From NCBI GenBank assembly GCA_904063045.1, contig CAJFCJ010000095.1, positions 141,184-184,822 on the forward strand: a DNA stretch of 43,639 bases. The letters run 5' to 3'. The notes below the pieces were generated by a model that saw only the letters and a program-made list of their open reading frames with translations, searched no databases and was not told where the DNA came from. Positions 4,801 through 30,041 of the stretch are shown piece by piece; positions within the stretch are counted from its first letter, which is position 1; the number at the start of each line of letters is the position of its first letter. The DNA comes from Dimorphilus gyrociliatus. Its lineage: Eukaryota > Animalia > Annelida. The translations under genes were made by a program, and so were the position numbers.

Positions 4801-6076
4801 TTGACATCAACTAATATTTTATCTGAAGAACGGGTCTCAGGAGCAATTGAACAGTATATTCCTCCATAATTTTTAGGTGTAGTGCAATTTTGAAAGAATG
4901 GATATGATTTCTGTTTAAGCAAACTGTTTTGTTACCATTCATTTGTTATAAGTACATTTTATGAACAAGCTGAATATGCCTAATATCCTTGCATGAATAT
5001 ACATCAAAGGACTTGTTGATCAAGCCACAAAGGAAAGTACATGCATTATATATTTGAGTTTCAAAACTAAATGCAGTTGGCAGAATTCCAAAAGATTTGG
5101 ATTTAATATAATAGTTTAAGTGGATTTGCTCCTGGTCCGAGAAGTGTGTGAAGAAATGTTTGGTCCATATTGAATGAATTGAACTGGTTATTTTTAGTTC
5201 AATATCTTGGAAAAACAATATATGATGTACTACATTTCAAAACACGTTTTAAAGAATATATACCAACCACGCAATTCATGAAAGGAACATGTGACCCATA
5301 AACTAAAATTGAAGTTTTGGAAAATTTTCTTATACATTTTATCTGAGTATGAAGGCAGTGAAACACCAAAAGACGTGTTGTATTTTATTGATGTTCTAAT
5401 GAAGAATTCAGCATGTTCACAAAAATCATTTTTAGTTGAAAAATGGCCTTGAATTTGATAATTCTTTTGTTCATTTCTTAAAATTAGGTTATAGTTTCCA
5501 ATCATATTTGTATTTGAAACATAGATAGCATAGATATCTATTGGATAAAGGATTAATGAAGAAGAAAGTGAAAATAGAAAAAGAATAGATATCTGACATG
5601 TAGCATGTTTTCTAAAACACTTCAATTCCATTGCTCCAGTGTTTCTCCATGCATGATCTTTGGAGTTATAAAGCAGGCTTTCAACACAAATTGCAGAAGA
5701 AGAAAACAGATATTGGATGTAAAATCAGTGAAAATATTACTTACAATTTACAAGGTTGTATATCTTCATATAGTAAGAATTTAGCATTTTCAGCTACCTT
5801 TATTAGTGACGTTCTTGAAAAAACATGATCATAGCCTAATTTTTTACAAATTGCATTTAAATCTGCCAAATCTATTCTTTCATACATAATATAATAAAAC
5901 GATCTATCACGTGACACCCATCCTGTCAATAATCCTTCAACAGAGATATTTTTTTCATCTCTCTTTATGTTAATCAGAGATAATTTAGGACACAATATTC
6001 CTTCACAAAAATTTGACTTTAAACCAAATTCGTGTAGAACAAAACCAAATTTGAAAATGAAATTTATAATTTTCAT
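1..6076 (-). CDS. Multi-exon GRL101/RXFP-like leucine-rich-repeat GPCR: degenerate SRCR-like modules, 6 LDLa, LRRs and hinge; 7TM lies beyond the left edge
   Basis: ATG at 6076 (MKIINFIFKFGF...). Exons joined in phase by hand from about 2762 down to base 1. Junctions between 2762 and 6076 were not all checked, so the upstream part could be a separate gene. The 3' exon (885 to <1) has no stop in the window. Confidence 0.75.
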
Positions 6077-9443: not shown

Positions 9444-12400
9444 ATGTTCAAGATGATGATGATAATTTTTAAGTTGTTTTCAATTTTAACTATTGCAACT
9501 ATTTTAAAAGGTATTTTTTTAAGTTTTCTTTTCGCTTTTTTTACATATTTATACACATATTTTTTCCAACCCATTCCACCCACACTTTAGGTGACAATTG
9601 CCCCTCTGGCTGGATGAGATATCTTGATAGTTGCATAGCTAAATTGGATGATAACTCAAGTTTTCCTTTGTGCCGAAATCATTCTTCAAATCTCATTAAA
9701 ATTGATTCTTCAAGAAAACTTTCGTTTGTTCAATTATTTATTGAATACTCACCAAAACAAAATTATCTTATTGGATTAAATAGAACAAATAATACTAAAG
9801 GAAATTTTTCAACAAATTTCATTTGGAATGATGGTACACCATTAAATTTTCATAATTTCCATCCAGGTGAAGAAACCAATCTTTTGAATACACTTTACGT
9901 AACCATGGAAACTAATAATGGATTATGGAGAAATATCCAAAATTTAACAAATAATTCTGGTTATGTATGTGAAATGTCAAAAAGTTTGTAATTTTCTTAC
10001 TTTTTTTTATATTTTGAGTTATTTAAAAACCATTCTAATTGTTTTTTAAAAACAACAAACAAACAAACAAACAGTTGATACAACAGGATGTAGACCATAT
10101 TGGCACGTTTTAAAAGGTTATAAAGATTTAAGGAATTCTACAAAAATTGATAGTTCAAAAGAAATTTGCCTTCAGGTTTTTAAAATTTTCCATTCAAATT
10201 AATTTCTCTCTTTAATTGGAATTTATTGAATATTTTAGGATTGTTTTTCCGGTAAATACGGTGTTTGTCATAGTATTTCTTGGGATGTTCAAGCTAAACA
10301 ATGCTATTTACATTCTACAAAAATTTTTGCTGAAGATTTTAGCAGTCTGGTTACTGATATTATGTTCAATATCTATCAATGGGAATGCGAAGGTGACAGT
10401 GAACCAGTCTGTTTTAGGGAGAATAATATTATTGATAACTTACCGGATAAAAGTTTCACAGCATCGACTGTTGCAACAGCAGCTAAATCTCTGCCTGTTC
10501 AAGCAAAATTCAGTAGTTATAGACAAGAGAACCAATTAGGAGCATTTAGGCCTGAATCTATTTATCCATACCAATGGCTTCAAGTGGACCTATTAAATTT
10601 ATACAATGTAACTGGCTACCATATTTTAGGAGGAGAAAGATACGACAAAAACACAGTTATCAATCATTATGTCTTGTACAGTTTAAATTGTCAAGACTTT
10701 TCCTACTACAGTACAATGCACACCAAAGAAATTATTGTAAGTAAATTATTTAGTAATTTATTCATCTATTCATTTGCCTCTTCATTTTTCCAAGATGATG
10801 ATTGGCCACGGTTTTTGGTCTTTAACAAGAGTAATACTATTTAAATATCCTATTATCGCTCGTTGTTTTCGTATACTTCCAATAACTTGGGATACAACAC
10901 CTGATTTGCGTCTATCACTTCGCGGTTGTCAACTCAATAAGCAGATTTTAGTTTCGGGTAAAAAAACAATTAGTACGGTTAATGTTTTTTCTATTCCGTA
11001 ACATTTTCAATTAAAGATTTAGAAGGGGTTGCATTAGGAATGGAGTCGGGTCATATTGAAGATTATCAATTAAGCGTAAAAGAAATGAAAGCGAGTTTAA
11101 CAGTTCATTATCCGCCATTTTTAGCGAGATTAAGAGGTCGACCAAAAGATTATCCTTTCCAAATTCCCTGTTTCTATCCAATAGAGAAGGATAATTGGTT
11201 CGAAGTAATGTGGTCGCTTCCCATTCAATTTTATGGATTATCTATAGACCCTTCTCAAGCTTCTTATGGTAATATTCAAGTGTTTACAATGGCAGTGGCT
11301 AGTCAGATTGGCGTCGACATGTTGGAAAAGGTAAAAGATGACAATGGAAATGTTCTTCAATTTTCCCTTCCCAATGACCTTGTTACAATTACTCCAATTC
11401 AAATAAGATTGGACGAACCCCTAACGGCTAGATATGTTCGTATTTATCCAGTTAAATGGCAAAGTCTTGGATGCAGCGTATTCGAATTCTATGGAAAATT
11501 AGACGGTATGAAAAGTAGACGCCATCTTGAAATATAATTTAATAATTTTACTTAAAAATATCCTTTTTTCTTAGCTATTTGTCCTAATCTTGGTCTTGAA
11601 AACAATAAAATTTGCCCAATAATGCAGAATATTTCTACAGTTTACAACGAAACATCAGGATTAATGTACTCTAGAGTAGAATCAACAATATTAATTGAAT
11701 TGGATCAATTATATCATTTGACCTCATTTCAAATAAAATTCGCTCGTACACCACTTCCGGTTTGGACATTAAACTGGTCAAGAGACAATAACATTTGGAA
11801 GTCATTAGACAAGTATAAAATTGACAAACAGGATGACAAAACCCATAACATAACATTTTTAAATCAACATTCTGCAACAAAACTACGTATAAACTTATGG
11901 AATTTAAATACAAGTTTGACAATTCCTTGTATTGAATATTCAATAAATGGCTGCGAAGCTGAAACATGTCCACCAAATACTATTGAATATGATCATTCTT
12001 GTTATCATTATTTTCCTGGAGAGATATACGGGGCTTCTGATTTTGATACTGGCCCTATAAGGCATATTTGCGATAATATTGTATGGAAAAATCAGGCCTA
12101 TACTGTTGAAGTATCATCTATTGAAGAAGATTCTCTGGTTGTATATTTGAATAGAAGGTTTGTTTTCAAAACAATGAAATAAATAACCCACTTACACCCA
12201 TAACTTCCGCCCTTCGCCCAATATATTTTTATGTATTAAAATATCTACTGTTCTTTCATGTCTTTAGGACAGGGTTTAGAGTATTTTATGGACTGGTTGT
12301 AAATAATTCAATACCCCAAACCCCTCATATGAAATTACTCAATCCAGATCTTAATTGGCAATGGTCCAATAATGCTGAACATAACTTTACAAATTTTGAT

Positions 12401-15400
12401 CGTAATAACGATGTAGGTGAACCAGGATTACCAACTGAACATTGCGTAATGTACTCAACGAAATTTTATGCCTGGCATAATATTAACTGTAATGCTCCTT
12501 GCCAATATCTTTGCGAAATGAAAGCCAACAAGAAAAGGCAAAGTACTCAGAGTACAAAATGGTTTTATTATCAAAATTCTTCATTAAATTCTAATCATTT
12601 GCATAAAGTTTACGAAACTACTCAAGTGGAAAGTTGTTCGTATTTGTGTCAACAACAAAAGGAATTTCAATGCAAAAGATTCGCTTTTGGGCATGATTCA
12701 CAAAAATGTTTCTTGTATAATGAAACTACAAATTACGATATCAATTCTATACCTGTAGATGGCGTTAGTAGTTTGGATACTTGGGAAATATATTCAACAG
12801 TTAACGAATGCGAACAACCACTAATTGAAAGTCCAAATGGAATATCAGATTCAAATATTCAAACCAATTCTCCACCAATGTCTTCAAGGTACGGTATATC
12901 TCAATTACGGATGGTTTACCGTCAATTTTATGGTTCAAGACACCCGGATAATGCAGGATACTTTAAAGGATCAGATCAAACTACTTATCTAAAAGTAGGC
13001 TTAATATCTATTTTGCATTTATATTAAAAAGTTTTTTCGTGTTTTTTTTTTAAAAAAAAACAGTTCGACTTTGGAAGGATTGTTCGAATGACACGAATCA
13101 AGATAGAAGGAGCCGGAAGCTACAGCCAAAAATGGATAGAATATTTCTACTTAGCAATCAGTAATAGAACAGACAGTTTAAATTTTGTTAAAACGTCTAA
13201 TGGAGATCGTCGAGTAAGTTATAGACCTAAATTTTGTTTTATGAATAAATTATTCAAATTAGTAAATTTTTAGAAATTTTTTGGAAATTTTAATCAATTA
13301 GCAATTATTCAAAATGCTTTTCGTCCCCATTTAATTGCTCAATACGTTCAGTTTTTTGCCTATTCGTACCACCGTGAATATGCAGTTAGACTGGAATTTT
13401 ACGGTTGTAATTATACCGGAATTGTGGATGAGTTTACTAAACCTCTTGGTCTGAAGAGTAATTATATATTACATTCTCAAATGCTAGCCGAACAACTTTA
13501 TACTGCTCATACGGGAATTCACGAAATTCGATTAGGTTGTCTACCAGTTTTCCACTCTACTGGGTACTTTCATGTAATTGGAAAATGGCAATTTGACCTT
13601 GGCATTCAACATTTTATAGTAAAAACAATATCTACCGGTAATTGTAATGGACGTATCGGATATTTGAAAACTTTTTCAATAATGTATACAAATGACCTTG
13701 AACAATGGTCATACCATGTGACTAATAATGGATCAGTTAAAAATTACTATGTTAGCGAATCGAATGAAAAGGCAGAAGTAACCTTTGATCCTATAATAAA
13801 AGCTCGTTACATAAGATTTATACATACTGACCAAAGCAATTCTATTATACCAGCTATTACAATGGAACTTTACGGCTATCCAGCAAAACATTCCAAATTG
13901 GGAGTAACTGGTAAATTCCCCAAAACAATTACTGTATCATCTCAGAAGAGTTTGTCTACTTCCGGTAAGATGGCGTTAATGTTTGACAATAGTTTCTGGT
14001 GTAAGGAAGATAATGACACTGATGGTTGGTGGTTGGCTGACATGAATACCATACATTACATAGAGAGAATTTATATATATCATAAAGAGAACCAATTCAA
14101 AGATTCTTGTAAGGATATTTCTGTGTCTGGAGCTCAATTCGATAAAAAAAATATCACTAAAATGGCCGATGTAGGGCAAAGAGAATAATATTATTCAACA
14201 ACCTTGACATTTATCTCTTTTTTTTCATTCCTTTAGGAAATAACATGTAAATCCGAATTGAATAGGACAATTATCTTTTCGTCACCAGCATTGAGATTGA
14301 GATATATCCTTCTAAATTTCACTAATGGACCAAAAGATTGTGTCAGATTCGAATTGTATGGTGAAAAAGCTCCAATTTGCCCTCCCGGCTCTCTAAGGCA
14401 GTTGGATAAGTGCTATACGATTTCAGATGCGCCAGCAAATTTTGAACAATGCGATAAATTTTGCAAAACTGGATTTAATTGGAAAGATCAAGGTTATTTG
14501 GTAATGCCAAAAAATTCATTCGAAGTAGATCTCGTTCAAAGATATTATATGTTTAAGTAAATATTTCTAAGGATATTGGGAGAAATAGCCGCCAAAATGG
14601 TGGCTATATACAGAAAAGTATCCCAAATTATCTCTCCCAAAATCCAATATTTTCAATATAATAATAAAGTAATAATTTATTTTTTAAATAAAACTTTTTA
14701 TTAGAGATAAGAACTATGGTATCTATATTGGAGCTAAACAAACAACACTAACTAGCTATGATTGGTTGGATGGAACACCAATTACCAACTATTTACAAAA
14801 AAGCTTTCACTTTTCTGCAAATATTTTTAAAACATACCTTATCAGAAAAGACACCTTTGAAAATAGTGAGGGCACTGAAAACGGTTACGCAATGTGCGAA
14901 ACAATGGCGAATTGTTAGTTTCGTATTATTTTTTCAATTCTTTACAAAATACGAAAATAACAATGAAAAATGTTCTCTTTTTGTTCCCCAAATAGTACCA
15001 GATGATGAAAATGATTATGATGAAGAAGAAAATTGCCAGCCTTTATATAGTTTATTGCCTCATCATACTTTAAATAGTACCCCAATAGCATCTCTAGATA
15101 TCACGTATCTAAGAAATTGTCTAGAGTATTGTTCATCAAAGAAATGGTGTAAATCAATTGGATGGGAATTTCAGTGTGTATTATGTTTATTTCATAAAAA
15201 AAAGATGCATTTGACAACATTTTTTTTGCAGATTAAACAAACAAAAAACATGTAAATTATATAATCAAACAAGTTCAATGTTGAAATATAACAAATCTAA
15301 TTTTGATTATAAAGAAAACATGTATTTCTTTGAAAAGTTTTGTTTTGATAGAAAAAGTTACAAATTGTTACCGGAAGGTAACTTTGAAAGTGAAAAAGAT

Positions 15401-18400
15401 TTTAATGTTACAACTAGAGTTTATAAACAGTCGGATAGTGATTATACTGATTTTCGTCTTGGAAAATCAATGACAAGTTATATCGTTGCAACTTGTTCAG
15501 ATGAATATGTTTATGAATGCTATTTGGAAGTGAATTTTGAGAGATTAGTAACATTGACTGCCTTTACTACAGCTTATAGGCTGTTTCATGACCAATATAC
15601 AAGAACAGCTCAAATCTTCTACAAAAGATCTTCGTATGATCAATGGCTGGCTGTTAGAGACAAGGATGGTGATATTATTGTAAGATAGACTTTCTCTTCT
15701 CTTTATTGAAACACACATTACTTAATACTGAATTTATATAACAGAGTTATTTTATTCAAGAAGATCAAGGCTATTATAATCACATTGAATTTTCTTCTTA
15801 CATTGTTTGTAAGGGATTTAGATTTAATCCAATAGATCAGAGACTCAAGGCAATTTTAAGCCTCCAACTATATGGAAGATATTTAGAGGATGATGATATT
15901 CCTATCTATACTCCAAAGTGCAATCATCCACTTGGAATTGGTGATAAAAATCAGATACACATCTCTCAGATAACTACTCCATCTTATTTAAAACCCTATT
16001 ATGCTAATAATGTAAGATTGGACAGCTTAAATTGTTGGATTCCTGAATCTCTACAACCGAATGATTACATTCAAATAGATTTAGGTCATGTATACCACGT
16101 GACAGGTTTTATTTCGCAATCGTGCAAAAGTGAAAAAAAGTACATTTATGAATTTAATGTTAAGTACTCGTTATATAGAATTCACGGATGGAAAACGTAT
16201 AATGAAGAATCATTGAATAATAAAGTAAGATTTTAAAATGACCTTGAGTATTGACCTTTCCAAAATGTAACTCAATTTTTAGACCCTCTTTATAAGAAGT
16301 AGCCCAATATTAACAACAAATATGAAATATCTATTGCTCTTTAACGAAACAATAGATTTACGATTTATGCGATTATCGCCCAAAGGATGGTACAATAACA
16401 AAGGATTACGCTTAGAGATTATCGGATGTATAAAACGTAAGAGTGACTAATACAACAAAAAAACCAAAAATTGAGTAATCATCTTTGTATTTTTTTCTTT
16501 AACTCTTTGCAGAAGAAGCTGCAATAACAACTGCAAAAAATGAACTACAACAGATTACTGTTCAAGAGGATACTTTAGGGGGAAATTCAATTTATTGGGG
16601 AGAATTGATTAATCCAAATTTAACTTGCCTAAAACAACCAATCAAAATAGGCCTAAACTGTAAAAGTGTTTATAAAATTACTGGATTTACAATTTATTCG
16701 AATTTAACTGAGAATTTAAACTTAACAATTGAATATTCGTTAGATTCTTTAAAATGGATAACTTATTCAAATGGTTATGATTATAATTACTCAAACAATG
16801 TAAATAATTTGATAAAATAGAATTTTAGTACAGTTTTTATTTTGTGTTTTATTGTTTTTTAGACAAAAAAACACCAAATATTATTATCTATTCCAATAAT
16901 TGCTATTTACGTAACGTTATCAGTTCAAACTGATAGTTTGATTTGTTGGAAAATATCTATTCATGGAGGGAAATATTCTGGTATTTATACTACTCAATAA
17001 TCAATACAATACCTTATCTTTTCTTCTTCTAGAATGTCCACCTGGATACTTTCTCTTTGGTACAAAATGCATTTCACACCATTCTTCTACAACTGCTACC
17101 CATTTCAGTTCTGCTAATGAGTGTAAAGGCCTACCGTGGAAAGGTGAAGGTTACATGCTTTTACCAAAGTATGATGAAATTTTAAATGTATTCTTACAAG
17201 GTTTTTTCTCAAGGTCAGTTGATAAATTTTTCTGTAGTGTTTTTAATCTAAATTTTTCCCTTCTGTTTTATTGTTCTTAAATTATAGCGAATCAACAGAA
17301 ACACGTATGGGATTAATGCTCCACAATGGAAAATTTACCTGGTCAGACGGAAGTACATTACCAGAAAATGAGGTTATAAGATGGAATGGTCCTATTGGCT
17401 TTGACACCTGTGGAGCTTTTGACAAATCAAACGGATTCTGGCAAAAGATATCTTGTTTTACCGACAGTTTATTATTCTCATGCGAAAAGGACGCATTACG
17501 TAATCAATACTTTTACTAAAAAAACATTTTCAAAACACTTATTTATTTATTTCATAAACATCCACAGCGCCACCTAGCGAAAAAAAAAATAAATTTTGGA
17601 CAGTTGTCCCATCGGCATCGCTGAACACATCTAATGCAAATAGTTGGATTTATAAAAGCGATTTCAATACAAAATTCGATTGTTTAATGGCATGTAATGA
17701 AGAAATAAGATTCGATTGTATCTCATTTTCATTTGATACAAAGACAAAAGAGTGTATGTTCTATTCTACAAACACTTACTCAAAAGATAGCTACCTGAAA
17801 AGGGATATATATGATCAAGATAAATTCTACTTTGAAGCTCATTATCATGGTTTTTAAACATTTAAATTTTTAAATTTATCTTCTCCTAGTTTATCTATGT
17901 TAAAATTCTTGCAGGTGAATGCTCAATTAGCCTGATAAAAGAAAATGTATTGGGAGTAAAATGGAATGTTTCTTCTGAATACGATTCGTCAACTGATAAA
18001 ACTCATTTACCATTACACGAAAAAAAAGGTTTAAAGGGCTATTGGAGACCTAAAGATACTGATACTAAACCATGGATTCTCTTCTATTTCGATCAAATCT
18101 TATCAATATCTTCTTTCATTTTACAAGGAAGTGGAAAATTGAGTGATTTTGCATATGTTAAAAAATTTACAATTCAATCGTCAATAGATAATATCGAATG
18201 GAGTAATGTCACGTGGGATTATAGTAATACATATGACTTTGAAGGATCATTTGATCATGTTTATTCAAGATTATATACATTTAAAAATTCATTGCGAACA
18301 CGTTACGTAAAATTCGATCTAATTGAAAAAAGAAACTCTTTTTCTATGCAAATTGAATTGTTTGGTTGTGTTGAATTTATTCCAGATTGTTTTACTGTAC

Positions 18401-21400
18401 CGTCAACAAACGACCTTCACATTGAAGGTACCGATAAGAAATCTAAATTAAAATGCTTTGAAGATTGGACAGTTATTGGTCAGAAACTCTCAGCCGACAA
18501 TGATTATTGGCTAAAAAATTGGTATGATTATAAACATGGATTTGAAAGTGATAAAGAATTTTGGTCTGGTAATGAATTAGCAACATATTTAACTAATTTT
18601 AGACAATATAATGCTAGGATTGATATGTGGTCTAAAGACGGAAGTCACGTGCACAGTGAATTTGAAGGAATTAAATTTCAATCTGAAAGAAATTCCTATT
18701 CAAAAACTATTGAAAAATTCCAAAGTGGTAGCGCACCGTCAACGAAATTTTTAACAACAACCTACTTTTATTCAATTGATAACGATAATGAACTTTCTTG
18801 TGCTCAAAACACAAAAAGTGGTTGGTGGTTTTCTAAAAGTTCCTGTTCCTCTTCGAATTTAGTAGGTTCAAATTCTTATTGGTTTCTTGATGCAACTGAT
18901 TTGAATGACGTTTATAAATTTAAAGTTGAAAAATTTCTTTTTAAAATTAAACCAAAGACGCCGTGTTAGTATAAAAAAGGGGGTTTTTAGACAGTTTAGT
19001 AGTAATTAACCAGTTTTCATTAACCTTTTCAGATAATATCGCTCTTGGTAAAAAAGCATATCAAAAAGTAACCAATGGTAAAAATGAAGCAAACCTAGCC
19101 ATTGATGGTATTGCTTTAAGTGACGCCTCACTAGGTTATTGCGCAATTGGTGAATTAACAACAAATCCTTGGTGGGTTGTTGACTTGCTCAAATCATTTA
19201 ATGTCACCGGAATTACAGTACTCAATAGAAAAGATTGCTGTTGTAAGAGAACAATAATTAACATTTATTTATTTAAGTTTAAAATTTTGAAATTTATTTG
19301 TTTTCCTATTTTTTAGCATCAGAACTATCCAACTTTACAATTGGACTAGCAGACAGCTTTGATGAGAGTAATTTCAATCCTACATTATTCAAATTATGTA
19401 AATATTACAACAGAACTATTGGATCTGGTGTAAAAGTGGCTATAAATTGCGAAAATGAAAGTACTCAAGGTTCTTATCTAGCTATATGGATGGAAGGTGA
19501 AAATCGTAGATTAGGCCTATGCGAAGTTGAAATTAAAGCGAAGTTAAAATATGGTGAAAGCAGTTTTGGAGAAGATTGCGAAACGGATTCGAATTGTGTT
19601 GAAGAATTAACGTCTTGTCTTCCAAGATTCGAACCTAAAAATCTCGATATTTTATCCTATTCTTGTCAATGTTCCCTCTACACTATTCGAAAAGATAACA
19701 AATGTTATGCTGGTAAGAAATTAGGCCTAATTTTTTAAAATGTGACCTAGATATTTTTTTTTGAAATACAGCTACAGACATTCTGTTGAAGAATATCAAC
19801 TTTCAAGGTGAATTTATAAGGGAGGAAGAAAGTACTCAACAATCGACAGTCTTATTGGTTAATAATGGTGGTTGGACAATTGCTGAATCAACTTTACCAA
19901 ACAATAATTTTGAATTTTCAGCATTAATTTCAAATTTGGAGAGTAATTTTACTGAAACATGGAGACAAGATTTAATTTTAACTTTCATATATGGATTAAA
20001 CGCCGAATTGCCTAGTAGAAATTTAACAAATTTAACAAAAAGAGGTGAAGCGTCTATTTCTTTATCAGCTTCATTGAAATTTCCAATTTTACAATGCTAT
20101 AATCAAACTTATGTTTGTGGGAATGTATTGAGATCTCCAAACAGCTCATTTATTGAATGGGATTCATCAAACAATGAAAAATGTTTCTCATTTTTACCTT
20201 TCATTAACTGTAAACCGGAAATAGATTTATCAATATTCAAGATAACTCTCATGTGGAAAGAATACATTTATAGGAGTATTACTCAAAATCATACATTTGT
20301 TGTTACCTTGTTAAATAACAATTCAAATGTTCATGACGTAATACCCCTTTTTGACGAATACTTTAATTTCGATATGGAATATGTTTTATCCGATAAAATT
20401 GAAGATATTAATAGTAGCAATCCAAAATGGAAGAAAGCAACAATGGATTTAAAAGATAAACAGAAAGGACTAAAAATTGGAACAAATTTAAATTTAACAA
20501 TTAATTTATCAGCCTATATCTCAAGATCTCAATGCGAAAATGATCTTAATATCTGCTTTAGAATCGTCTTATCAAATTCATCATCCTATAAGGAAAGTAA
20601 TAGAAATAATGATATTCTTTGCCTAAATCTGGAAAAATATAAAAATTGTACACCAGGTAAGTTAGCTAATTATAAGGCGAGTATGAGAAAATGTCAACAA
20701 TGAGAACAGGTTAGGTCAAGGTTATTGTAAAGGGTTAGAAATAATTGAACATTGAAAACTAGAGGTTTGACAATTTCTCCAATGTCCCAACAGTTGCTGT
20801 CTCTATGTAAAATATACTAAATACCAGTTTTTATTTAGCTGTGAAAATTCTGACAAACCTTACAATTCCGAATAAAAGTATAATAAGAGGCTATATTCAA
20901 CCTTTACAAACAATTGTTAAATGGACAAACATTGATGACAGATTTAATGTTGAGTCTATTCCAACTGATAGATATAATTTTAATATTACACTCTTCTTTA
21001 CTGAAATCAATATGGAGGAAAATGATGAGTCATCACAAAATTTCTATAGTCTTATTAATTCATCATATATATCAAACAATTTATCTATAAATAGTAACAT
21101 TGTTTTGGAATATTGGAATGTTGTAAAAATTCCCAGAATTCATTGCTCTAAATATAAATTCTTATGTTTCAAACTTTTACCGGCAGACGGAGCTTCCTAT
21201 TCAGTTTTTAATGAAGATAAAAGTTTTATTTCTTGTTTGAATATGGAAAATTATATAAATTGTTTAGGCCTAGCGATAAAAGGTTTAAATTTTCAAATAA
21301 CAAATGACAACCTAATGGAGGGAAGCCAAAGTGAATTTTCAGTTTTATGGAAAGAAGGGACAGATGTAAATTATATTGTAAATTTTACAAATATAGATTC

Positions 21401-24400
21401 AACATATTGGAATTGGTTAGAATCAGGTCACGTGTCCTCATTTGGACAAATTAGTAAACAAACTTTACAATATAATTATACAAACTACGGCAGGTATAAC
21501 GTTAGTTTAACAGCATGGAATGAAGTTGGAATTGAAATATTTTGGTTAATTAAAATTGTTGAACCAATATTAGAGAATCATATTGAAATTTTGAATGAAT
21601 ATATTCCAAATGAACCACCTGTTCAAGTAATTTTCAATGTTTATTATAAATATGATACAAACAAGAAAACAAAACAAATTTCATTGAGTTGTATTGTTGA
21701 AATGGATCAAAATTTTACTACATACAAAACTGGTACTCTTAGTCATAATCTACCAGTTTTTATTGATTTTATCTATCCTATTGACAAATTACAAACAACG
21801 GCAATTGTCGTTTGTAATAATACAGTTTCGAGTTTTAATTCTACTTATATATTGAAACTTCAACAAAATGTTTCCGATCTAATAATGAAATTTAATGCCA
21901 CCTATTGGCCATCATTTAAAAATATTTCTCTAGAATTAACGTTAAAAAACGGAAGTGACGTTGAATATGAAATTTCATTTGGTGATGGAATAATTAAGGT
22001 ATTTAAACATCCTGAGTTGTTTGCGAATAGAAGGCCATTTTTAACATATTATTCCTACTCGCTGATTGGTGAATATAAAGCAAAGGCAATAGTTAGAAAT
22101 GAATTTTTTAACTGTTCAAGCGAAACTACTCAAAACCTTTTCATTCAGCATGAAATAAAGAAAATTGACTTGAGACTTTCTTATAAACAACCTAGAACAG
22201 TTAATTTAACTATAACAGAAGTTGAGAATGGGTTTTCACCCACAAATGTCACATGTCTAATTCAATATAGCAATAGAGGAAATGAAAGGATATTATACAA
22301 CGTTGACCTAATTAATGGGGTATTTCTAATTTATGAATATAGTAGAGAGTTTAACGAAAGGGAGAAAAGAAATTTAACAATAAAAGCTGTCTGTTATAAT
22401 AACGTTTCCAGTTCGTCTGCCCAACAAAATCTTTTACTAGAGGAGGAAATTTCTCACTTGAACGCTTCAATTGACAAAACTACTGTGAAAACTTTTGAAC
22501 AGTTTAGTATAAATTTAACAGCAATAACCGGAACAAATATAAACTGGACAATTGATTTTGGAGATGATGGAACCAGTCTAAATAAATTTAATGATGGCCC
22601 AGGAATGGAATATAATTTAAATTATACTTATAAAACTCCTGGATTATTTCAAATTGTGATTAAAATGTTCAATTCAGTTAATAATATCACTAGACACTAC
22701 TCAATTATTGTTCAAGTACCAATTATTGATTTTATAGTTGATACACCAAAAACTGGTACTATTGACAATCAACCAATAAATTTTAATGTCAAGGTCAACC
22801 AGCAAGGTCAACAGCAATCTCCAACGGATGTTTTCTGTTCATTTCAGCCAGTATTAAAACAAAATGCAACAATTGAATATGTATACAAACCGGAAATGAC
22901 AAATAAAAAACAAATGACACTAAGCTATAACTATTCAAAAATGGATGTTGGTAGAAATATTACAGTTGGAATATCATGTAAGAATTTGGTTAGTAAATTT
23001 GAATATTATTCTAATTTATCCATATTTGAAAAAATTCAAAATTTAACGGTCAATATTGAAAAATACGGTTATGAAAAATATGAAAATATATCACTAATTT
23101 TAAATGTTGATGCTGGATCGTCAATTATTTATAAAATAAACCAATCGGCCACCATTTTAGTGGAGAAACATCCAATGATATTCGCCAATCAGCAACCGTT
23201 TGTTAAAGTTTTACAATTCTCTAATATTGGTAATCATTCTTTAAGGATAGTTGGAGAAAATGACGTCAGTCAACAAGAACAAATCATTGGTGTAGTTGTA
23301 CAGAATAGAATTGAAAATATAGACTTAATGGCAAATGAATCAATATTATGGACGCCTGGCGTTATTTCATATCAACTTTACTCTGAATCTACTCAACAGA
23401 TTCTTACGGATGTCTATTGTCAATTTGAATTTAGTAATGGTATGTCAGCAAATAAATTCATACCAATATGGCCGCCGAGTGGTTTATTTACCTATAATTT
23501 CTACTTTCCAAAAACTGCTATTGGTAACCTAACTACAAATTTGTCTTGCAGTAATTTGCTATCTGTTAAGAAACTGCAAACTAGGACAGAAATTATATTA
23601 GACGCCGTAATAATAGAACAAATAAGAGATAACGGAACTGTCCTATTAACCAATGAAACAACTATAATTATTGAAATTAGCAGAATGGGTACAAATTCCT
23701 GTTTTATCCTTGACCTTGGTGATACATACTCAACAAAATTGGCATTTGGGGTTAATGAGCTTTGCGAGAATTTTGCCTTTGAAAGGTCAATAAACTTTAC
23801 TAAAATAGGTTATGAAGAGAAGACAATTGTAATTAATCATGTTTACGAAGCGGTAGCCTATTACAGTATTAAAGTCGAAGGATTTAACAATATAACAAAA
23901 GATGAAAAATCGTTTATTACAAGAGTTGCAGATTGGCATTGCTATAGTCCAAATGCAACTGTACCCATTGAATATACAATTGCAGATAATCCATTGCAAA
24001 TTATTAAAAGTATTGCAGTAGAAATACCAGTAAATATTAGTTGGGATTGTATGAAGACTAATCAACTGCAATACGAATGGAAAATAATCGAATTGAGTAC
24101 TAATTCTTTAGTATTTCAATCGAATAATAAAACACTAAAAGTAGGTGAGCGACAATTGGATTATGGACAATATAAAATTGAATATTTTATACAAATGTTC
24201 AATATTTCTTATGCTAATAATACTTATGAATATTTTATTGAAATCATACCAAGTCAACTACATGCAGAAATTGAAAATGGTAAATGGATTAGTGTCAATT
24301 ATGGGATTAATCAAACGTTTAATGCCGGATTATACAGTTACGATCCGGATAATCAAGAAAATGATAAACTTAAAGGCCTACACTTTCATTGGTACTGCAG

Positions 24401-27400
24401 GCAACAAAATGAAGTAATACCATTCAATTTCAATAGTTATATTCAAACAGGACTAAATTTATTAAAAATACCAACATTAAGTGAATTTAAAAAAAATGGC
24501 GGATGTTTTGGAAATGGTCCAGGATATATTGGCAACAGCAAAACTGGAAAATTAACATTAAAAACATATTATATGATACCGAATATAACTTACATTATAA
24601 CAGTTAAAATTCAATCAAATATTCAAAATAGACAAGCAATATATGAACAAAATCTCTATTTAAAACCATTTGAAAAGCCAATTTTAAATATAAGGTAATT
24701 TTAATACAAATATAATAATTAAATATATGAGAATATATGAAACACCTTCTTTACAGATGTAAAAAGAATTGTCTTAGGAAGAAAGCTCTCTCTTCTTCAA
24801 TCATTTACAAAGCTGTTTGTTTGTCAAAGTGTACTAGCCTCTATTGGAAAATTTCATACTTTTGGAAAAGTTTTGTGTACGCTAATCAAACTTTATCATT
24901 TGTTCAAGATTTTCAAGATAGAGTCCTTAATGGGAATTTATCTTTAGTTTCCATAGAAATAAAGGAAAATGGTCTATTTCCAGGACATTATCATACTGTA
25001 AGTGTTGAAGGGCAAATGGGAGAAATTGGCGATATTGGATACACTAATGAGACATTTCTAGTTAATAAACCACCATTTGGTGGCCATTGTAGTTGCCAAC
25101 CAAGATATGGTTTTGCTTCGATAACAAACTTCCGGATAAGTTGTCTAGGTTATAAAGAATTTGAAAAATCCCCCGACGCTCCAGGTTTAAAATACGAGTA
25201 CAGAGTAAGATGGAAAGGCAGAAGGCAAAGTTTCCCCCTATACTTTTCTTACAATCAGGAAGCAGTTTATCTTATGTTACCAGTTGGAGATCCCAAGTAT
25301 GGAATTACTGAAACTGTAGTCCGAGTTATTGATTCCATTGATGATAAATACGAATTCATTTTTGATGTTCACGTTCAACCACCCCCAAAACCTGAACGTT
25401 TACTATTAGAATCAACTCTTAATGATATAAATAATGGAAATTTAGAAATTTTGTTGGACGTTGGTAATTTTAGCCAATTAGCTTCGAGTATTTACTCAGT
25501 TGCTTCCATTCTGAATACAAATTTGAGTAAGCCGCCGAAAGAATTAGAGAGAGATAAATGCGAAAAAAGAACCACACGAATTGGGGTAATATATATATAT
25601 ACTTTATATAAATGCTATTTAATATATAAACTCTTCTAATTGTATCAATCCTTTAAAAGATACGAAAACAATTGATTGAATATGTATTGAAGACTCCCCA
25701 TGAATCGGTTGATGAACTTGAACAAAATAATGGTCTTATAAGTTCTCTTGTATTCAAACCAAAAGAAGTGGACATCAATTCCCAGGTAAAATTACAATAT
25801 TTAAGTTAATTGAGTAGTGTTACCATTAACAATTTTCTTTCAGGTAAATGTAGCTAATCAAGTTGGCAAGTTAAATACCGTATTAAATACGAAGAAAATC
25901 ACTCCAAAACTTAGAAGAGAAATATCCATTAGTACGAAAATAACTTTTACATAATAATTCAATTGAAATTATGTTTTTTTTCTTTATATAGGCCTATTAG
26001 AAACATCTATTCTAGTAACTACAGCTGCTGACACTTTTAAGCAAGATGTTGAGAAGAAAGAAGAATTTATCGCCAGTAATAAAAATAATAATTCGACAAT
26101 CTTCTTTTGCGACATTACGTCACGTGACAATGGAACAAACTTACCAAACAATAATACTATAGATTATATTGTTAATAGTACAAATAACAAACTGAGAATC
26201 GTTATGACTAACATTTTAAATGCTATTCATAACGTTACGAATGAATTGCTCTTGAGACAGAAATTGAATGATCCACCTTTAATTGTTGAGTATGAAGAAA
26301 TGGCTATTAGTATTGAAAGATTGTCCATAAATCGGGTCATAAATAATAACTACTCATCAAAATTTGGTTCAGTGAATTTGAATTCATTCAAAATTGATAA
26401 TAATAGTGATTCTTGCGTAACGAAAATGTTAATTATGTCAAGAATTAATCCCTATATGTGGGATAAATCTTCTCTAAATGTGACGTCATCAGTAACTGAA
26501 TTACAAATTAAACCTTGTAATTCAAATTCTGAACAATCAGCTAGAAGGAAGAAGAGAAGTGTTGAAAACATTCAAACAAATTTTACACTTAATTTACATA
26601 TGCTGAGTGATAATACGGCCTTTCAACATATAAATACAACAAATACAACAGCTCTTCATATCATTAATGCCACTAGGAGTGTTTTACTGTTAACGTTCAA
26701 ACTGAAGAGAGACGATAGCATCTCAGTGCTCATTGGTTATAATTTCATACCAGTTTCTGATAGAAATAACGCTTCGTTTATTCTACCAAATGCAAATAAG
26801 ACTTGTTCGTCCAACATGAATTTGGAAGATTGTATCCAGTACAAAAGAACAATAATGCTTAGGATAAATGAAAATCAAACTGTCATAACTTCCATTTCCT
26901 GTTCAAATTGCTCAAATGGAAATCTCAATTACAGCATTCATATCGCCTATCCAACCTGTAAAATGTGGAAAGGTAACAGCTGGGAAGAAAGTGACGCCTG
27001 TAGAATTGATAAAGAGACGACAGCGTCTAAAACAAAATTTACAAGTAATCTATTTGGTAGTTTAGGAGCTGGATTAGAAATGGCACCGAATCTTATTGAT
27101 TTTAGAACAGTTTTTAATGACTTTTCAACAAAATTGGCAAACAATGCAGCAGTGTTCGGAACGATATGTTCACTATTGATTCTCTTCATTCTCTTAGCAT
27201 TGCCAGTTAGAAGAATGGACAAGAGAGATACATTACTCTGGACTCCATTACCATTACTTGATAATTGTAAAGAAGATCAGTATGTATACGAGGTACACGT
27301 CTATACCGGAAGTAGGAAAGATTGCGGAACTAAATCAAAAGTTTGCTTAACTTGTTACGGAAGCGACTGCAATACCGGAAATCGTATACTATCATCTTCA

Positions 27401-30041
27401 AAGGAGGAAACAAGTAATTTTTTTCGTGAAGGGTCAACTAGATCATTCATAATGAAAACTACTCAGAGTCTAGGATCAATTATCTGTATTAAGATATCCC
27501 TTGAAAAAGATAATCCCAATAATGCGGATAATCCCGATGATCTTTCATTAAAAGAATACGATCCCTGGTTTTTATCAAGGATAATAATCATAGATAAAAG
27601 TGCAAATGCTTGGTACAATTTCGATTGCGACGAATGGTTGTCACCGAAACACGGCGATCGTCAAACTGAAAGAATACTAATTGGGGCGAGAAGTGACGCT
27701 AATACGAAAATTGATGGACTGTTTAAGAAGAATTTAAGACAAAGATTAACTGATGATCATCTCTGGGTATCCATTGGAGCTAGGAGGACAAAATCGCAGT
27801 TTACCAGACTACAAAGATTAACAGTCTGTTTTGTTGCTCTATTCCTGTCGATGATTGCTAGTTGCATGTTCTATAGAAATTCTGATGAATCATCTGTTCA
27901 AAATGGCTTGAAAATTGGCGTCATTACATTTACTGTATACGAATTATATGTTGGATTGGCTAGTAGTATTGTTGTATTTCCGGGATTGATTCTTATTACT
28001 TTGCTGTTCAATTCGAAAAGATGGCCCAAGTATACAATACCTCTTGGGTGGTCTTTTGCTGTTTTAACTGCATTTACTGCGGCGTTCTTTACAGTTTTAT
28101 ACTCTATTCAATGGGGAGAGGAAAAATCGTTACAATGGCTGATATCATTCATCCTATCATTTGTACAAAGTATTATTCTAGTTCAACCAATCAAAGTTAT
28201 ATGTATAGTATTCTTGCTGACGTTTTTCTTGAAAAAAGACGCCATTTTAACGGAATACGAAGATGATATTGGAGATATGAGAAAAATGGACATGAAGGAT
28301 CTATCACATGTTCCAGCTGAATTGAATATTTTTGAAAGATTAAAAATGGCGGCTGATAAGGAAAATAAATCAAAAATGGAAAATCACTTGGACGGAAAGA
28401 TGCGTATCATGATAAAAGATATTGTCCTACATACTATCTTTTTGATCTTTATCATCTTTATCTGCTACAGTAATCACAATCCTATGATTTATTATCAAAA
28501 TAGGTCGATATATAATACAATACCAAATGTTCAAAACGTAAAAAATTACGAAAAATTATGGGATTGGTTGGAAAATTACGCAATACCGGAACTTTATCCA
28601 AAGACCCATTATAATAAAAGAAATCTATCTTCGTATAATTTGAAATATACAAGAGAATTGAATCATATGAGATTTTCTTCTGTCAGACTATTTCAAAGAA
28701 GAGTTCAACAATCTAATTGTATATTAACAACAGAAATGAAAAGTCTATTTAAAAATCGTTCCTGTTGCGGTTTTGATGATAGTACTCTAGATTATTCATC
28801 AAGTTTGAATAGTACTCTACGTAACGCTTTTACGTATTCCATAAAGGAGAAGGGTTTCTCAGTATCGTTACGTCAGAACGGCGACGAAGCTTTACAAATA
28901 ATAACAAATTTGAAAAAATACGGTTGGTTAGATAGACAAACTCGTCACGTGATACTAGACGTCACAATTCTAAATCAAGTGATAGTTTCTCAAGCATCTT
29001 GGTCTTTTGAATTCAAACCAGTTGGAGGTATAATAGCCAAGGTTCGAAGTGATTCTCTGAAATTATATAGATATACTGGAGCAGGTGGTCTAGCAACTCT
29101 TATCTTTGAAATTCTATCAGTCCTAGTCTGGCTAATCTTTATCATTCGATGCATTTATCGTTACAAAAAATATTTTGAAATGCCTGGTGTCTTGCTGCTC
29201 ATCTCGCTGGTCTCTTTCACAATCTCTATTGTTTTATATATTTGGAGGACGATAATAGGTGTAAAATCAGTAGAAGAAGTAATGAATTCGAGAACGGAAT
29301 ATGTGGACTTATCATTGATTTTTTCAACACACCAATACTTTATGACATTTATTGCATTTTGCGGTTTTTTTGGGCAGCTTCACGTTCTATCTCTGCTGAA
29401 ATTATCAAAAACCATCACAGTTCTTGTCAGTACAATAAAGAAATCTTGCAAACAATTGATATCAATCGGACTTTGCTGTTGTATTATATTTATCGCTTAT
29501 GCTTGTTGGGGTTACGTCATATTTGGAAAGTCTATAAATAACTATAAATCTTTTAAATATGTCTGCTACTCACTACTTGTCACAATCTTCGGACATTTAG
29601 ACTTTGAAGCATTGTCGACAACTTCCGGTTTGATGGGAAAAATCTACATTACGTCATACGCATCTATAATGCTCTATTTAATTTTAAATATATTCATTAC
29701 AACATTAAATGAATTTTTATATAGTGTCAGGTTAGATCCAACCGCATTGCCAGAAGATCATAAAGTATTTAAATACATGACTGCAACAATTGCAAAGATG
29801 TTTTCAAAGAATAATACAAAACCAGAAGAGAATTTAAATCCTGAGCGTAACGATAAATGTAATAATTCAAAATTTAAAGGTTTGTTGATCGATAACAATT
29901 GAGTAGTATTGAACAAATATTCAATTTTCAGAGTTAAATACTAAAATTGATTATATGGAAAAGATTATCTTCTTGAATTCTGATAAAGATATTGAAATAT
30001 ATGAAAAAGTATTGAATGTACTCAAGTTGAAAACATTTTGA
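9444..30041 (+). CDS. Giant polycystin-1 family (PKD1-like/REJ-type) protein, 31 exons, about 6,100 aa, with a lectin-array ectodomain
   Basis: Signal-peptide exon MFKMMMIIFKLFSILTIATILK (9444-9510). All 30 GT-AG introns join in compatible phase by hand, e.g. 9511-9590, 18965-19032, 20657-20838, 29880-29931. Stop TGA at 30039-30041 and AATAAA at 30135. PKD, REJ, GAIN/GPS, PLAT and the 11-TM polycystin channel region are recognisable. Confidence 0.9.
9591..18369 (+). other. Polycystin ectodomain part 1: 4 C-type lectin, 4 PAN/apple and about 10 F5/8-type-C (discoidin)-like domains
   Basis: CTLs start CPSGW (9600), CPPNT (11967), CPPGS (14379) and CPPGY (17035). PAN examples: CSYLCQQQKEFQCKRFAF..KCFLY and CLMACNEEIRFDCISFSF..ECMFY. 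F5/8C examples: WLQVDL..VTG, ARYVRIYP..FEFYG, YIQIDLGHVYHVTG, MQIELFGC. Several discoidin copies are degenerate. Confidence 0.85.
18385..18960 (+). other. Fibrinogen C-terminal (FReD) domain in the polycystin
   Basis: WTVIGQK, NWYDYKHGFESDKEFWSGNE, FYSIDNDNELSCAQNTKSGWWF..CSSSNL.G. Confidence 0.9.
19033..19711 (+). other. F-type lectin (fucolectin) domain followed by a small Cys-rich (EB-like) module
   Basis: NIALGKKAYQ..A..AIDG..NPWWVVDL..V..I.V.NRKDCC..LGLCEVEI, then GEDCETDSNC...CQC...KCY. Confidence 0.85.
21300..25400 (+). other. About 9 PKD/PKD-like Ig-fold domains followed by a REJ module
   Basis: YEISFGDG, WTIDFGDDG, Y..PG.F.I...N.V. REJ motifs: FNAGLYSYDPD, LHFHWYC, GGCFG, C.KNC, VNKPPFGGHCSCQP.YG...TNFRISC. 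Confidence 0.85.
25400..29720 (+). other. GAIN/GPS, TM1, PLAT and TM2-TM11 polycystin channel region
   Basis: PTCKMW..W....C, APNLIDF, TM1 (AAVFGTICSLLILFILLALPV), YEVHVYTG..GT.SKV..YG..F.EG..WFLSRI..DEWL, HLWVSI..S.FTRLQRLTVC, WLDRQTR, FGHLDF, LNIFITTLNE. Eleven hydrophobic segments counted. Confidence 0.93.

Follow-up and report, generated by a model that had tools for sequence, protein, structure and literature searches.

Positions 9444-30041 on the forward strand of the Dimorphilus gyrociliatus window (the whole 43,639-nucleotide stretch of DNA that was analyzed) constitute one expressed gene encoding a protein of the polycystin-1 (PKD1-like/REJ) family. A hand-curated splice model joins 31 exons into one stop-free frame, with a coding sequence of 18,369 nt specifying 6,122 amino acids, the ATG at 9444, and the stop codon at 30039-30041; the 30 introns of this curated model are all of the GT-AG type and range from 52 to 182 bp (mean, 74 bp). 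The extent of the gene and the size of about 6,100 residues put forward in a preliminary description of this DNA were both reproduced, the coordinates exactly. Chance cannot account for an 18-kb frame that stays open over 30 splice junctions; this is far beyond what it could produce. The model combines a conservative pass with hand curation; an iterated splice-site model was dropped when it diverged to 116 spurious micro-exons, and an earlier 3' end, with a stop codon at 29900-29902, was rejected because an extra exon, 29932-30041, is conserved in the tail of the paralogue DgyrCDS14777. The exons and the features of the encoded protein are as follows.

Exons 1-16 (+): 9444-9510, 9591-9983, 10075-10175, 10239-10736, 10795-10957, 11023-11505, 11575-12157, 12268-12994, 13064-13213, 13274-14170, 14237-14556, 14705-14913, 14996-15173, 15232-15679, 15745-16224, 16283-16436
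Exons 17-31 (+): 16513-16799, 16863-16980, 17033-17213, 17288-17499, 17568-17849, 17915-18964, 19033-19242, 19317-19712, 19772-20656, 20839-24694, 24757-25585, 25660-25785, 25844-25931, 25992-29879, 29932-30041
9444-9509 (+): signal peptide exon (MFKMMMIIFKLFSILTIATILK), hydropathy peak at residues 3-21, joined in frame by splicing to the beginning of C-type lectin 1
9593-11960 (+): super-repeat 1, with C-type lectin 1 (9593-9982), PAN1 (10080-10397), and discoidin 1-3 (10410-10935, 10948-11504, 11577-11960); Pfam, internal HMMs
11964-14368 (+): super-repeat 2, with C-type lectin 2 (11964-12523), PAN2 (12542-12814), and discoidin 4-6 (12827-13414, 13430-13858, 13871-14368); Pfam, internal HMMs, PDB alignment of C-type lectin 2
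14375-16973 (+): super-repeat 3, with C-type lectin 3 (14375-14906), PAN3 (15031-15352), and discoidin 7-9 (15365-15882, 15916-16435, 16539-16973); Pfam, internal HMMs
17035-18375 (+): partial repeat 4, with C-type lectin 4 (17035-17489), PAN4 (17582-17848), and discoidin 10 (17849-18375); Pfam, internal HMMs; intron 17850-17914 RNA-confirmed
18379-18963 (+): fibrinogen-related domain; Pfam Fibrinogen_C, E = 6.1e-18, profile positions 42-189 of 221
18964-19543 (+): F-type lectin (FTP) domain; PDB 3CQO, E = 5.8e-17, and 1K12, E = 2.7e-10
19553-19711 (+): EGF-like Cys-rich segment, read by eye from the translation, with no Pfam match
19712-21269 (+): R1-R3, three tandem unnamed Cys-containing all-beta modules of about 146 aa each, spanning intron 20657-20838; pairwise BLAST, E = 1e-5 to 9e-7
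20657-20838 (+): longest intron (182 bp), RNA-bridged, separating the lectin half from the PKD/REJ half
21270-25585 (+): PKD repeats followed by REJ; Pfam PKD, E = 5.8e-18, with REJ values given below
25660-27130 (+): GAIN-like region, with polybasic RRKKR/S (26543-26560) and degenerate GPS KFTSNLFGS (27023-27070); alignments
27146-28228 (+): TM1 (27146-27202), PLAT (27314-27706), and TM2-5 (27818-28228); Pfam PLAT, E = 6.8e-16, hydropathy, match to polycystin-1 chains 6A70_B and 8Z6F_A
28406-29725 (+): channel half, with S1, polycystin/TOP domain (28463-29086), S2-S6, and pore; Pfam Polycystin_dom, PKD_channel, and Ion_trans, PDB alignments to PKD2L1 and PKD2
29726-30038 (+): cytoplasmic tail, including a last small helical exon, 29932-30041, conserved in DgyrCDS14777

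A Pfam scan of stop-to-stop pieces placed all domain matches on the forward strand, within 9473-29899, and the families matched were Lectin_C, PAN_1, F5_F8_type_C, F5_F8_type_C_2, Fibrinogen_C, PKD, REJ, PLAT, Polycystin_dom, and PKD_channel. From the N terminus, the protein consists of a signal peptide, three rounds of C-type lectin-PAN-three discoidin, a C-type lectin-PAN-discoidin-fibrinogen-F-type lectin-EGF segment, three unnamed Cys modules, PKD repeats, REJ, a GAIN-like region, TM1, PLAT, TM2-5, and a six-TM channel half. Some 20 lectin-type domains, belonging to five fold families, make up the outer half of the protein, with about 2,800 aa of lectin- and adhesion-type modules. The domain counts in the preliminary description were recovered: four C-type lectin and four PAN domains by internal HMMs, one fibrinogen and one F-type lectin domain, and 10 discoidin positions. 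Eight significant F5_F8_type_C stretches were found by Pfam in the spliced public protein (whole-protein E = 6.6e-79), and two discoidin positions are weak, giving only weak matches (i-E of 0.16 and 0.017) to an internal HMM built from five of this gene's own discoidin domains, together with weak or moderate ones to F5_F8_type_C_2. A recent tandem duplication of the super-repeat was rejected, as the units are about 20 to 27% identical or not detectably alike by BLAST. The R1-R3 modules matched no Pfam family, and AlphaFold modeling of the unnamed exon-25 region from a three-sequence alignment gave a pLDDT of 42, too poor for use. The Pfam match to REJ, with an E value of 2.1e-21 on one exon, reached 4e-50 on the spliced protein, where it covers profile positions 3-448 of 452.

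That these exons belong to a single gene, as had been proposed, is upheld by the continuous frame, by an RNA contig that crosses 20656|20839 without mismatch, by the R1-R3 array lying over the same junction, and by collinear sequences in paralogues and in another species. Spliced contigs with no mismatches confirm four introns (17850-17914, 19243-19316, 19713-19771, and 20657-20838), and the contig that bridges the lectin and PKD/REJ halves is 503 nt in length, with 315 nt from exon 25 and 188 nt from exon 26. For exon 26, 33% of the words sampled were present in the RNA run, versus 7% for 9591-14170; because the 5' lectin exons are less well covered by RNA words and no full-length transcript was seen among the RNA contigs, shorter 3' isoforms may also be produced. 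RNA support was not found for the first 127 residues, the signal peptide exon included. The gene is already public with Pfam domains attached, as an unnamed prediction only: DgyrCDS14890 (5,744 aa) corresponds to this gene, and 5,741 of its 5,744 residues are identical to those of the curated model. Five segments, 378 residues in all, are missing from it: the signal peptide together with the greater part of C-type lectin 1, most of PAN3, a portion of C-type lectin 4, the end of PAN4, and one of the Cys modules.

Two paralogues in the same genome are collinear with this gene domain by domain: DgyrCDS14777 (5,543 aa), with 51 to 74% identity per domain and 57% overall, and DgyrCDS14438 (6,071 aa), with 20 to 63% per domain and approximately 30 to 43% overall. 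Both share the whole ectodomain and membrane layout, the lost GPS, and the RRKKR/S site, and both differ from it most in the lectin modules; between paralogues, these modules are 21 to 49% identical, versus 52 to 63% for the membrane part. A further member, DgyrCDS13672 (2,634 aa), lacks the lectin half and has its own signal peptide. Collinearity extends over residues 23-6063 in a contig of another species (Logan SRR23372228). Queried with the DgyrCDS14777 ectodomain, a word-indexed search matched only DgyrCDS14777 and the present gene. Among named relatives, the nearest are "PKD1L2-like" proteins from Lingula and Owenia; NCBI labels the nearest nondinophilid proteins "polycystin-1-like protein 2."

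Proteins of the polycystin-1 family have a GAIN domain with a GPS autoproteolysis motif directly ahead of TM1, and GPS autoproteolysis is considered central to the maturation of PC1. Here, the GPS region is homologous, but the C.C.HL^T/S signature is lost, both Cys, the His, and the Thr being gone, and Pfam GPS found no match in this gene. In the alignment, HL^T and both Cys are lost in all members of the Dimorphilus clade, whereas mollusc, echinoderm, and amphioxus relatives keep C.C.HLT; the loss is common to the Lingula relatives too. A polybasic site, R(R/K)KKR(S/N), is conserved amid otherwise variable sequence in four D. gyrociliatus members (this gene, DgyrCDS14777, DgyrCDS14438, and the short DgyrCDS13672) and in the other-species contig L005, and it is carried as ARKKRS by the Logan fragment P0004; the distance from this site to a downstream PN.IDF anchor is about 180 aa in five of these sequences and 107 aa in DgyrCDS13672, and none of nine outgroup proteins examined has the site. 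The conservation of this motif suggests that a furin-type convertase acting at RRKKR/S probably separates or remodels the ectodomain with respect to the membrane part, in place of GPS autoproteolysis.

The claim that the protein is an 11-TM member of the polycystin-1 family with a PKD2-like channel half was confirmed by the REJ, PLAT, Polycystin_dom, and PKD_channel matches, by hydropathy, which gave 11 hydrophobic segments after the ectodomain in the polycystin-1 pattern, and by PDB matches to polycystin-1 over TM1-PLAT-TM5 and to PKD2 and PKD2L1 over S1-S6. Alignment with PKD2 and PKD2L1 shows that the S6 "LN..F" motif is conserved and that the selectivity filter, ILGD in both of these channels, reads IFGHLDF (29585-29605), with His in place of the filter Asp, a substitution that would be expected of a non-PKD2 subunit. 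Two word-indexed searches, confined to protein records and dependent on shared 5-residue words, yielded no named D. gyrociliatus PKD2: the search with the channel half of this gene returned only Logan fragments of the same family, and that with a PKD2-like Logan protein returned mostly unnamed proteins, none from Dimorphilus.

The proposal that the ectodomain senses glycans was not sustained, as it followed from the names of the folds only and the residues of the classical sugar sites are largely missing. In the alignment, the EPN/QPD-WND motif for Ca2+ and sugar is absent from all four C-type lectin domains, the first two of which have GEETN/WRN and GEPGL/WHN at the equivalent positions and the third and fourth nothing comparable. 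Their best PDB matches were mostly to DEC-205/Ly75 and Reg3-alpha, and also to mannose-receptor chains, with no known sugar-binding domain singled out; the C-type lectin domains of DEC-205/Ly75 and Reg3-alpha are not known to bind sugar via the canonical site. The F-type lectin keeps the AIDG Ca motif (h2DGx) in the PDB alignment, but of the fucose-binding motif HX24RXDX4(R/K) (PMC5712786) two of the three fucose-contact residues are lost, the His being replaced by Ile and the last basic residue by Glu, with R-K-D kept; the Glu was placed by counting on the translated RKDCCSSE, as its exon is unaligned to a solved F-type lectin at that point. In the fibrinogen domain, the D.DND-type Ca region is kept, as read from the translation. 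Discoidin and PAN domains often have proteins or lipids as ligands, and the discoidin and fibrinogen domains could yet bind sugars.

Much of this organization is familiar from human polycystin-1 relatives. PKD1L2, PKD1L3, and PKDREJ likewise have REJ, PLAT in the first cytoplasmic loop, 11 TM segments, a TOP domain, and a PKD2-like channel half, and N-terminal lectin-type domains are present as C-type lectins in human PKD1, PKD1L2, and PKD1L3 and as SUEL in PKD1L2 (PMC1934368). In contrast to the one or two lectin-type domains of PKD1L2, PKD1L3, and PKDREJ, the present gene has about 20 from five fold families in a protein two to three times longer, and it lacks the GPS HL^T and carries a conserved furin-type site and the three unnamed Cys modules. 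The sea urchin proteins SpREJ1-10, of the PKD1 family, combine C-type lectin domains, EGF, PKD repeats, REJ, GPS, and PLAT with 1 to 11 TM segments; C-type lectin, SUEL, EGF, and WSC are the only added modules reported for them, whereas discoidin, fibrinogen, PAN, F-type lectin, and a super-repeat, none of which was reported there, are all found in the gene described here (PMC1934368). Also comparable are predicted PKD1-like proteins of amphioxus and a crinoid (Branchiostoma lanceolatum "PKD1L3" A0A8K0A8R5, Branchiostoma XP_078669286.1 and XP_078659501.1, and Antedon XP_071965421.1), which also combine F5/8C, Fibrinogen_C, Lectin_C, PAN, EGF, WSC, and LCCL with REJ/GPS/PLAT/PKD_channel, but with one to three copies per module, no C-type lectin-PAN-three discoidin super-repeat, lengths of 2,000 to 4,100 aa, and a canonical C.C.HLT GPS. 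The lectin modules were probably gained independently, because the amphioxus and crinoid proteins fall in other branches of a channel-domain tree, which is unrooted, unresolved inside the dinophilid clade, and built without human PKD1-family sequences. The suggestion that the architecture was undescribed therefore holds in part: our literature search found no description of it, but mixed lectin ectodomains exist in the amphioxus and crinoid predictions and the gene itself was already public with its Pfam domains, and the multilectin layout is unusual but not unique. Among annelids, PKD1-1 and PKD2-1 of Platynereis dumerilii are needed in ciliated collar-receptor neurons for the hydrodynamic startle response (PMC6294549); PKD1-1 is a polycystin-1-family receptor with a PKD2 partner and no reported lectin array, and its likeness to the present protein is one of family, not of compared sequence.

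We lean, if only slightly, toward the view that this one polycystin-1-family gene encodes the receptor subunit of a cation channel, with an ectodomain that serves as an antenna on sensory cilia and undergoes furin-type processing. The protein would form part of a polycystin-type complex, most likely as one copy with three PKD2-like subunits, by analogy with the solved PKD1-PKD2 and PKD1L3-PKD2L1 complexes, and would probably be located in the cilia of sensory cells, a placement that the Platynereis pair in ciliated hydrodynamic sensory neurons favors by analogy. The long multivalent ectodomain, processed at RRKKR/S by a furin-type convertase if the conserved motif is a guide, may attach to mucus, cuticle, matrix, the coat of another cell, or other extracellular material, and the engagement of a ligand or a pulling force on the antenna could be relayed through REJ/GAIN to the channel half. 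As neither the C-type lectins nor the F-type lectin have intact classical sugar sites, binding would probably use noncanonical surfaces.

The presence of five lectin-type fold families, the retention of the fibrinogen D.DND-type Ca region and of AIDG in the F-type lectin, and the faster divergence of the lectin modules than of the membrane part between paralogues would also suit a true multispecific glycan sensor, coupling the recognition of microbial, mucus, settlement-cue, or gamete glycans to Ca2+ entry with a PKD2 partner; the lack of EPN/QPD-WND, PDB matches that are mostly to noncanonical C-type lectins, and the frequent binding of proteins or lipids by discoidin and PAN domains speak against this. 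The C-type lectin domains of sea urchin REJ proteins have been linked to egg-jelly recognition (PMC1934368), but the F-type lectin here lacks the fucose contacts noted above (PMC5712786), and we regard such a sensor as unlikely. A more specialized form of recognition, in which a receptor of the sea urchin REJ type on the sperm of the dwarf male recognizes the egg coat and admits Ca2+, draws on membership of the PKD1/REJ family with C-type lectins upstream of REJ, as in SpREJ1-3 (PMC1934368), and on the rapid divergence of the ectodomain between paralogues. The nearest named relatives are nevertheless PKD1L2-like rather than REJ, and the existence of several paralogues of the same layout fits a family of sensory receptors at least equally; a gamete receptor seems quite unlikely.

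The channel-like half could instead be only a scaffold, with the protein working in the way proposed for PKD1, as an adhesion or atypical G-protein-coupled receptor; a recent study reportedly argues that PKD1 is a WNT-activated GPCR (PMC13061903), and the replacement of the filter Asp by His would accord with this. Against it, conservation with PKD2 and PKD2L1 is good in S5, the pore, and S6, the L and N gate residues of S6 are kept, and paralogues differ least in the channel half, making a nonchannel role very unlikely. A gene-model artifact, in which a secreted multilectin gene and a separate polycystin gene, or more than two genes, lie in series, might be read from the low RNA word coverage of the 5' lectin exons (0.07, against 0.33 over exon 26) and from DgyrCDS13672, which has no lectin half but its own signal peptide. 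It is extremely improbable given the RNA contig that joins exon 25 to exon 26, 20.6 kb with no in-frame stop and no gap greater than 182 bp, the crossing of the lectin/PKD junction by R1-R3, and the same domain order in two paralogues and another species. Extending the preferred reading of a ciliary receptor subunit, these genes might represent a dinophilid-specific class of polycystin in which convertase cleavage at RRKKR/S replaces GAIN/GPS self-cleavage and an antenna of about 20 lectin-fold domains, acting as a multivalent ligand or force sensor, directly gates the channel on glycoconjugate binding or pulling, with the paralogues forming a small family of different ectodomain specificities on a conserved channel core; in this full form, we consider the proposal unlikely.

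What the huge ectodomains of the polycystin-1 family sense is a question that extends to the human disease protein. The gene described here takes ectodomain elaboration to an extreme while its channel half is well conserved, and it does so in a tiny, very compact, culturable marine annelid in which a pair of collinear paralogues, together with a family member that lacks the lectin half, offers natural comparisons. A whole clade that lacks the GPS autoproteolysis site and has a conserved furin-type site instead constitutes a natural experiment on the relationship between ectodomain cleavage and function.

Open reading pieces follow one another in dense succession on the plus strand at about 9.4 to 30 kb of the AT-rich window (GC content, 0.26 to 0.38), and Pfam searches of the stop-to-stop translations placed Lectin_C, PAN_1, F5_F8_type_C, F5_F8_type_C_2, Fibrinogen_C, PKD, REJ, PLAT, Polycystin_dom, PKD_channel, and Ion_trans on this strand only and in that order. 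A splice model obtained by dynamic programming and then curated by hand joined these pieces into a 31-exon coding sequence at 9444-30041, from the ATG at 9444 to a stop codon at 30039-30041, with no internal stops and a product of 6,122 aa, reproducing the coordinates and the size of about 6,100 aa in the preliminary description; all 30 introns are GT-AG, with lengths of 52 to 182 bp (mean, 74). The gene structure and its assignment to the polycystin-1 (PKD1-like/REJ) family are established, and the encoded features are as follows.

Features of the 6,122-aa protein, in order
N terminus, plus strand: signal peptide
After the signal peptide, plus strand: three super-repeats, each C-type lectin, PAN, and three discoidin-type domains
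After the super-repeats, plus strand: fourth, partial unit of C-type lectin, PAN, and discoidin
After the partial unit, plus strand: fibrinogen-related domain
After the fibrinogen-related domain, plus strand: F-type lectin domain (best PDB matches, MsaFBP32 3CQO and eel agglutinin 1K12)
After the F-type lectin domain, plus strand: EGF-like segment
19712-21269, plus strand: three tandem copies (R1 to R3) of an unnamed Cys-containing module of about 146 aa, predicted to be all beta
After R1 to R3, plus strand: PKD repeats, then a full REJ domain (E = 4e-50)
Between REJ and TM1, plus strand: GAIN-like region
After the GAIN-like region, plus strand: TM1, PLAT, and TM2 to TM5 (PDB sequence match to polycystin-1, 6A70_B and 8Z6F_A)
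C-terminal to TM5, plus strand: PKD2-like half with S1, TOP domain, and S2 to S6 (PDB sequence alignment to PKD2 and PKD2L1)

Queried with the final 1,200 residues, an exhaustive HMMER search returned two other proteins of the miniature annelid D. gyrociliatus, DgyrCDS14438 (6,071 aa) and DgyrCDS14777 (5,543 aa), as its top two matches, and a further protein search found DgyrCDS14890 (5,744 aa), with the same precomputed Pfam domain set. The gene at 9444-30041 is DgyrCDS14890, since the exons match at 100% and 5,741 of 5,744 residues are identical to the splice model. The public model lacks five coding segments, together 378 aa, and at two of them RNA-contig joints favor the splice model. In the public model of DgyrCDS14777, S2 to S6 of the channel half are absent (residues about 5232-5449), through either misannotation or real truncation.

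Segments missing from DgyrCDS14890
9444-9902, plus strand: residues 1-127, signal peptide and most of C-type lectin domain 1
15106-15350, plus strand: residues 1568-1630, most of the third PAN domain
17167-17209, plus strand: residues 2131-2145
17756-17849, plus strand: residues 2280-2311, end of the fourth PAN domain
20656-21264, plus strand: residues 3158-3300, third Cys module

That the locus is one spliced gene, as had been proposed, is supported by the open frame, by RNA, and by collinear relatives. Logan contigs from one public run (X1, 2017) were aligned to 6 kb of the window (17500-23400), and spliced contigs without mismatches joined across introns 17850-17914, 19243-19316, 19713-19771, and 20657-20838. 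The last of these is the key joint for a one-gene reading and is bridged by a 503-nt contig with 315 nt in exon 25, on the lectin side, and 188 nt in exon 26, on the PKD/REJ side. Independent support for one transcript comes from the R1 to R3 array, which straddles this same intron, from domain-by-domain collinearity with both giant paralogues (DgyrCDS14777 and DgyrCDS14438), and from a 30.5-kb genomic contig of another organism (Logan SRR23372228; GC content, 0.32), with which residues 23-6063 are collinear at 22 to 43% identity. Because the RNA was aligned over 6 kb, and sampled-word coverage in X1 was just 7% at 9591-14170 versus 33% in exon 26, we infer rather than observe that the transcript is continuous over its whole length, that it includes the signal-peptide exon, and that no shorter isoforms exist. 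One RNA contig has a noncanonical joint at 18638-19152 (513 bases skipped, CG..GT, shorter side of only 20 letters), which probably arose by chimeric assembly across domains that resemble each other.

Pfam and internal HMMs bore out the earlier domain counts (four C-type lectin, four PAN, about 10 discoidin, fibrinogen, and F-type lectin); eight discoidin stretches were significant F5_F8_type_C matches on the spliced protein, and two further positions are weak, matching only a gene-derived HMM and F5_F8_type_C_2. The super-repeat units are only about 20 to 27% identical or not detectably alike, so the duplications are old. The R1 to R3 module matched no Pfam family, and its AlphaFold model (pLDDT, 42) is too poor to name the fold. 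The lectin-type folds behind the proposal of glycan recognition are present, but the canonical C-type and F-type lectin sugar sites are not intact. In the alignment of the four C-type lectin domains, no copy has EPN or QPD together with WND. The PDB matches of C-type lectin domain 2 are mainly DEC-205/Ly75, mannose-receptor chains, and Reg3-alpha; DEC-205/Ly75 and Reg3-alpha are not known to use the canonical sugar site. The Ca motif is retained in the F-type lectin domain; relative to the fucose-binding motif HX24RXDX4(R/K) (PMC5712786), this domain has Ile in place of the fucose-binding His and by count along the translation carries Glu at the last basic position. Glycan sensing by the ectodomain is possible but unsupported, since the canonical site is not intact in two of the five families and sequence does not reveal which ligands the discoidin, PAN, and fibrinogen domains would bind.

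The pore filter reads IFGH, versus ILGD in PKD2 and PKD2L1, with Asp replaced by His, and S6 is conserved (ILNIF...LN versus LLNMF...IN). The PKD1L3-PKD2L1 structure 7D7E is a 1:3 complex in which the single non-PKD2 subunit still lines the pore; by analogy, the filter and S6 pattern is what would be expected of such a subunit, although it does not prove conduction. At the GPS position (27023-27070), the alignment reads KF(T/K)SNLFGS in all members of the Dimorphilus clade, with both Cys, the His, and the Thr gone, a loss common to the Lingula relatives; relatives from molluscs, echinoderms, and amphioxus retain C.C.HLT. A polybasic R(R/K)KKR(S/N) at 26543-26560, set in otherwise variable sequence upstream of a PN.IDF anchor, is carried by four D. 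gyrociliatus members (the window gene, DgyrCDS14777, DgyrCDS14438, and DgyrCDS13672) and by the other-species contig L005, and the site reads ARKKRS in Logan fragment P0004, which likewise comes from another organism. The distance to the anchor is about 180 aa in five carriers and 107 aa in DgyrCDS13672. None of the nine outgroup PKD1-like proteins examined has the site, and seven of these nine retain HLT. From these alignments, we infer that furin-type convertase cleavage may replace GPS autoproteolysis.

The architecture had been put forward as undescribed, and no paper on polycystins with discoidin, fibrinogen, or F-type lectin modules, or on Dimorphilus polycystins, was found in the literature searched; similar mixing does occur in predicted proteins. 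In the sea urchin SpREJ study, the accessory modules given for the PKD1 family, with its human members among those covered, are confined to C-type lectin, SUEL, EGF, and WSC (PMC1934368). A predicted amphioxus PKD1L3 combines two F5/8C_2 domains with Fibrinogen_C, EGF, Lectin_C, GPS, PLAT, and the channel; further amphioxus models also contain PAN, WSC, LCCL, Xlink, and Trefoil; and a crinoid model joins WSC and PKD to three F5/8C domains and REJ. In the channel-domain tree, which is unrooted and unresolved within the dinophilid clade, a 100/100 clade on a long stem unites the Dimorphilus genes with related Logan fragments, and its grouping with Lingula and Owenia is loose. Because this clade stands apart from the lectin-bearing deuterostome forms, the lectin modules were probably acquired independently of them. 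DgyrCDS13672 (2,634 aa), a member of the dinophilid clade, has no lectin half. A giant uncharacterized abalone protein (Haliotis rufescens XP_048238653.1; 6,593 aa) falls into the same 90% cluster as a "receptor for egg jelly-like" protein of 3,121 aa and could represent either a fused gene model or one more PKD1-like ectodomain of very great length.

A rhodopsin-family GPCR (7tm_1, E = 3.5e-32; 40413-41572, minus strand) is encoded beyond the 3' end of the polycystin gene in the opposite orientation. As a 7tm_1 open reading frame is likewise downstream and opposite in the other-species contig (L001:16629-16877, minus strand), synteny may be partly conserved. The upstream neighbor (805-6076, minus strand) has an LDL-receptor class A module (E = 2.9e-5). 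Large open reading frames of 605, 325, and 316 aa at 33084-39020 (plus strand), where GC content is higher (0.38), matched no Pfam family except for a weak cEGF match.

The preliminary observation is thus confirmed and its interpretation partly supported. Two word-indexed protein searches, which need shared 5-residue words, found no D. gyrociliatus PKD2 gene. In databases, the architecture exists solely as an unnamed, partly mismodeled prediction. The window gene encodes a receptor of the PKD1-like/REJ type whose lectin-fold array is conserved and exceptionally large and whose cleavage logic is altered. On the basis of the conserved anatomy, the solved polycystin complexes, and the mechanosensory precedent of Platynereis PKD1-1/PKD2-1 (PMC6294549), the protein would be a ciliary or sensory polycystin receptor subunit, processed by a furin-type protease, whose multivalent ectodomain antenna would bind extracellular material and convey binding or force to a heteromeric channel.
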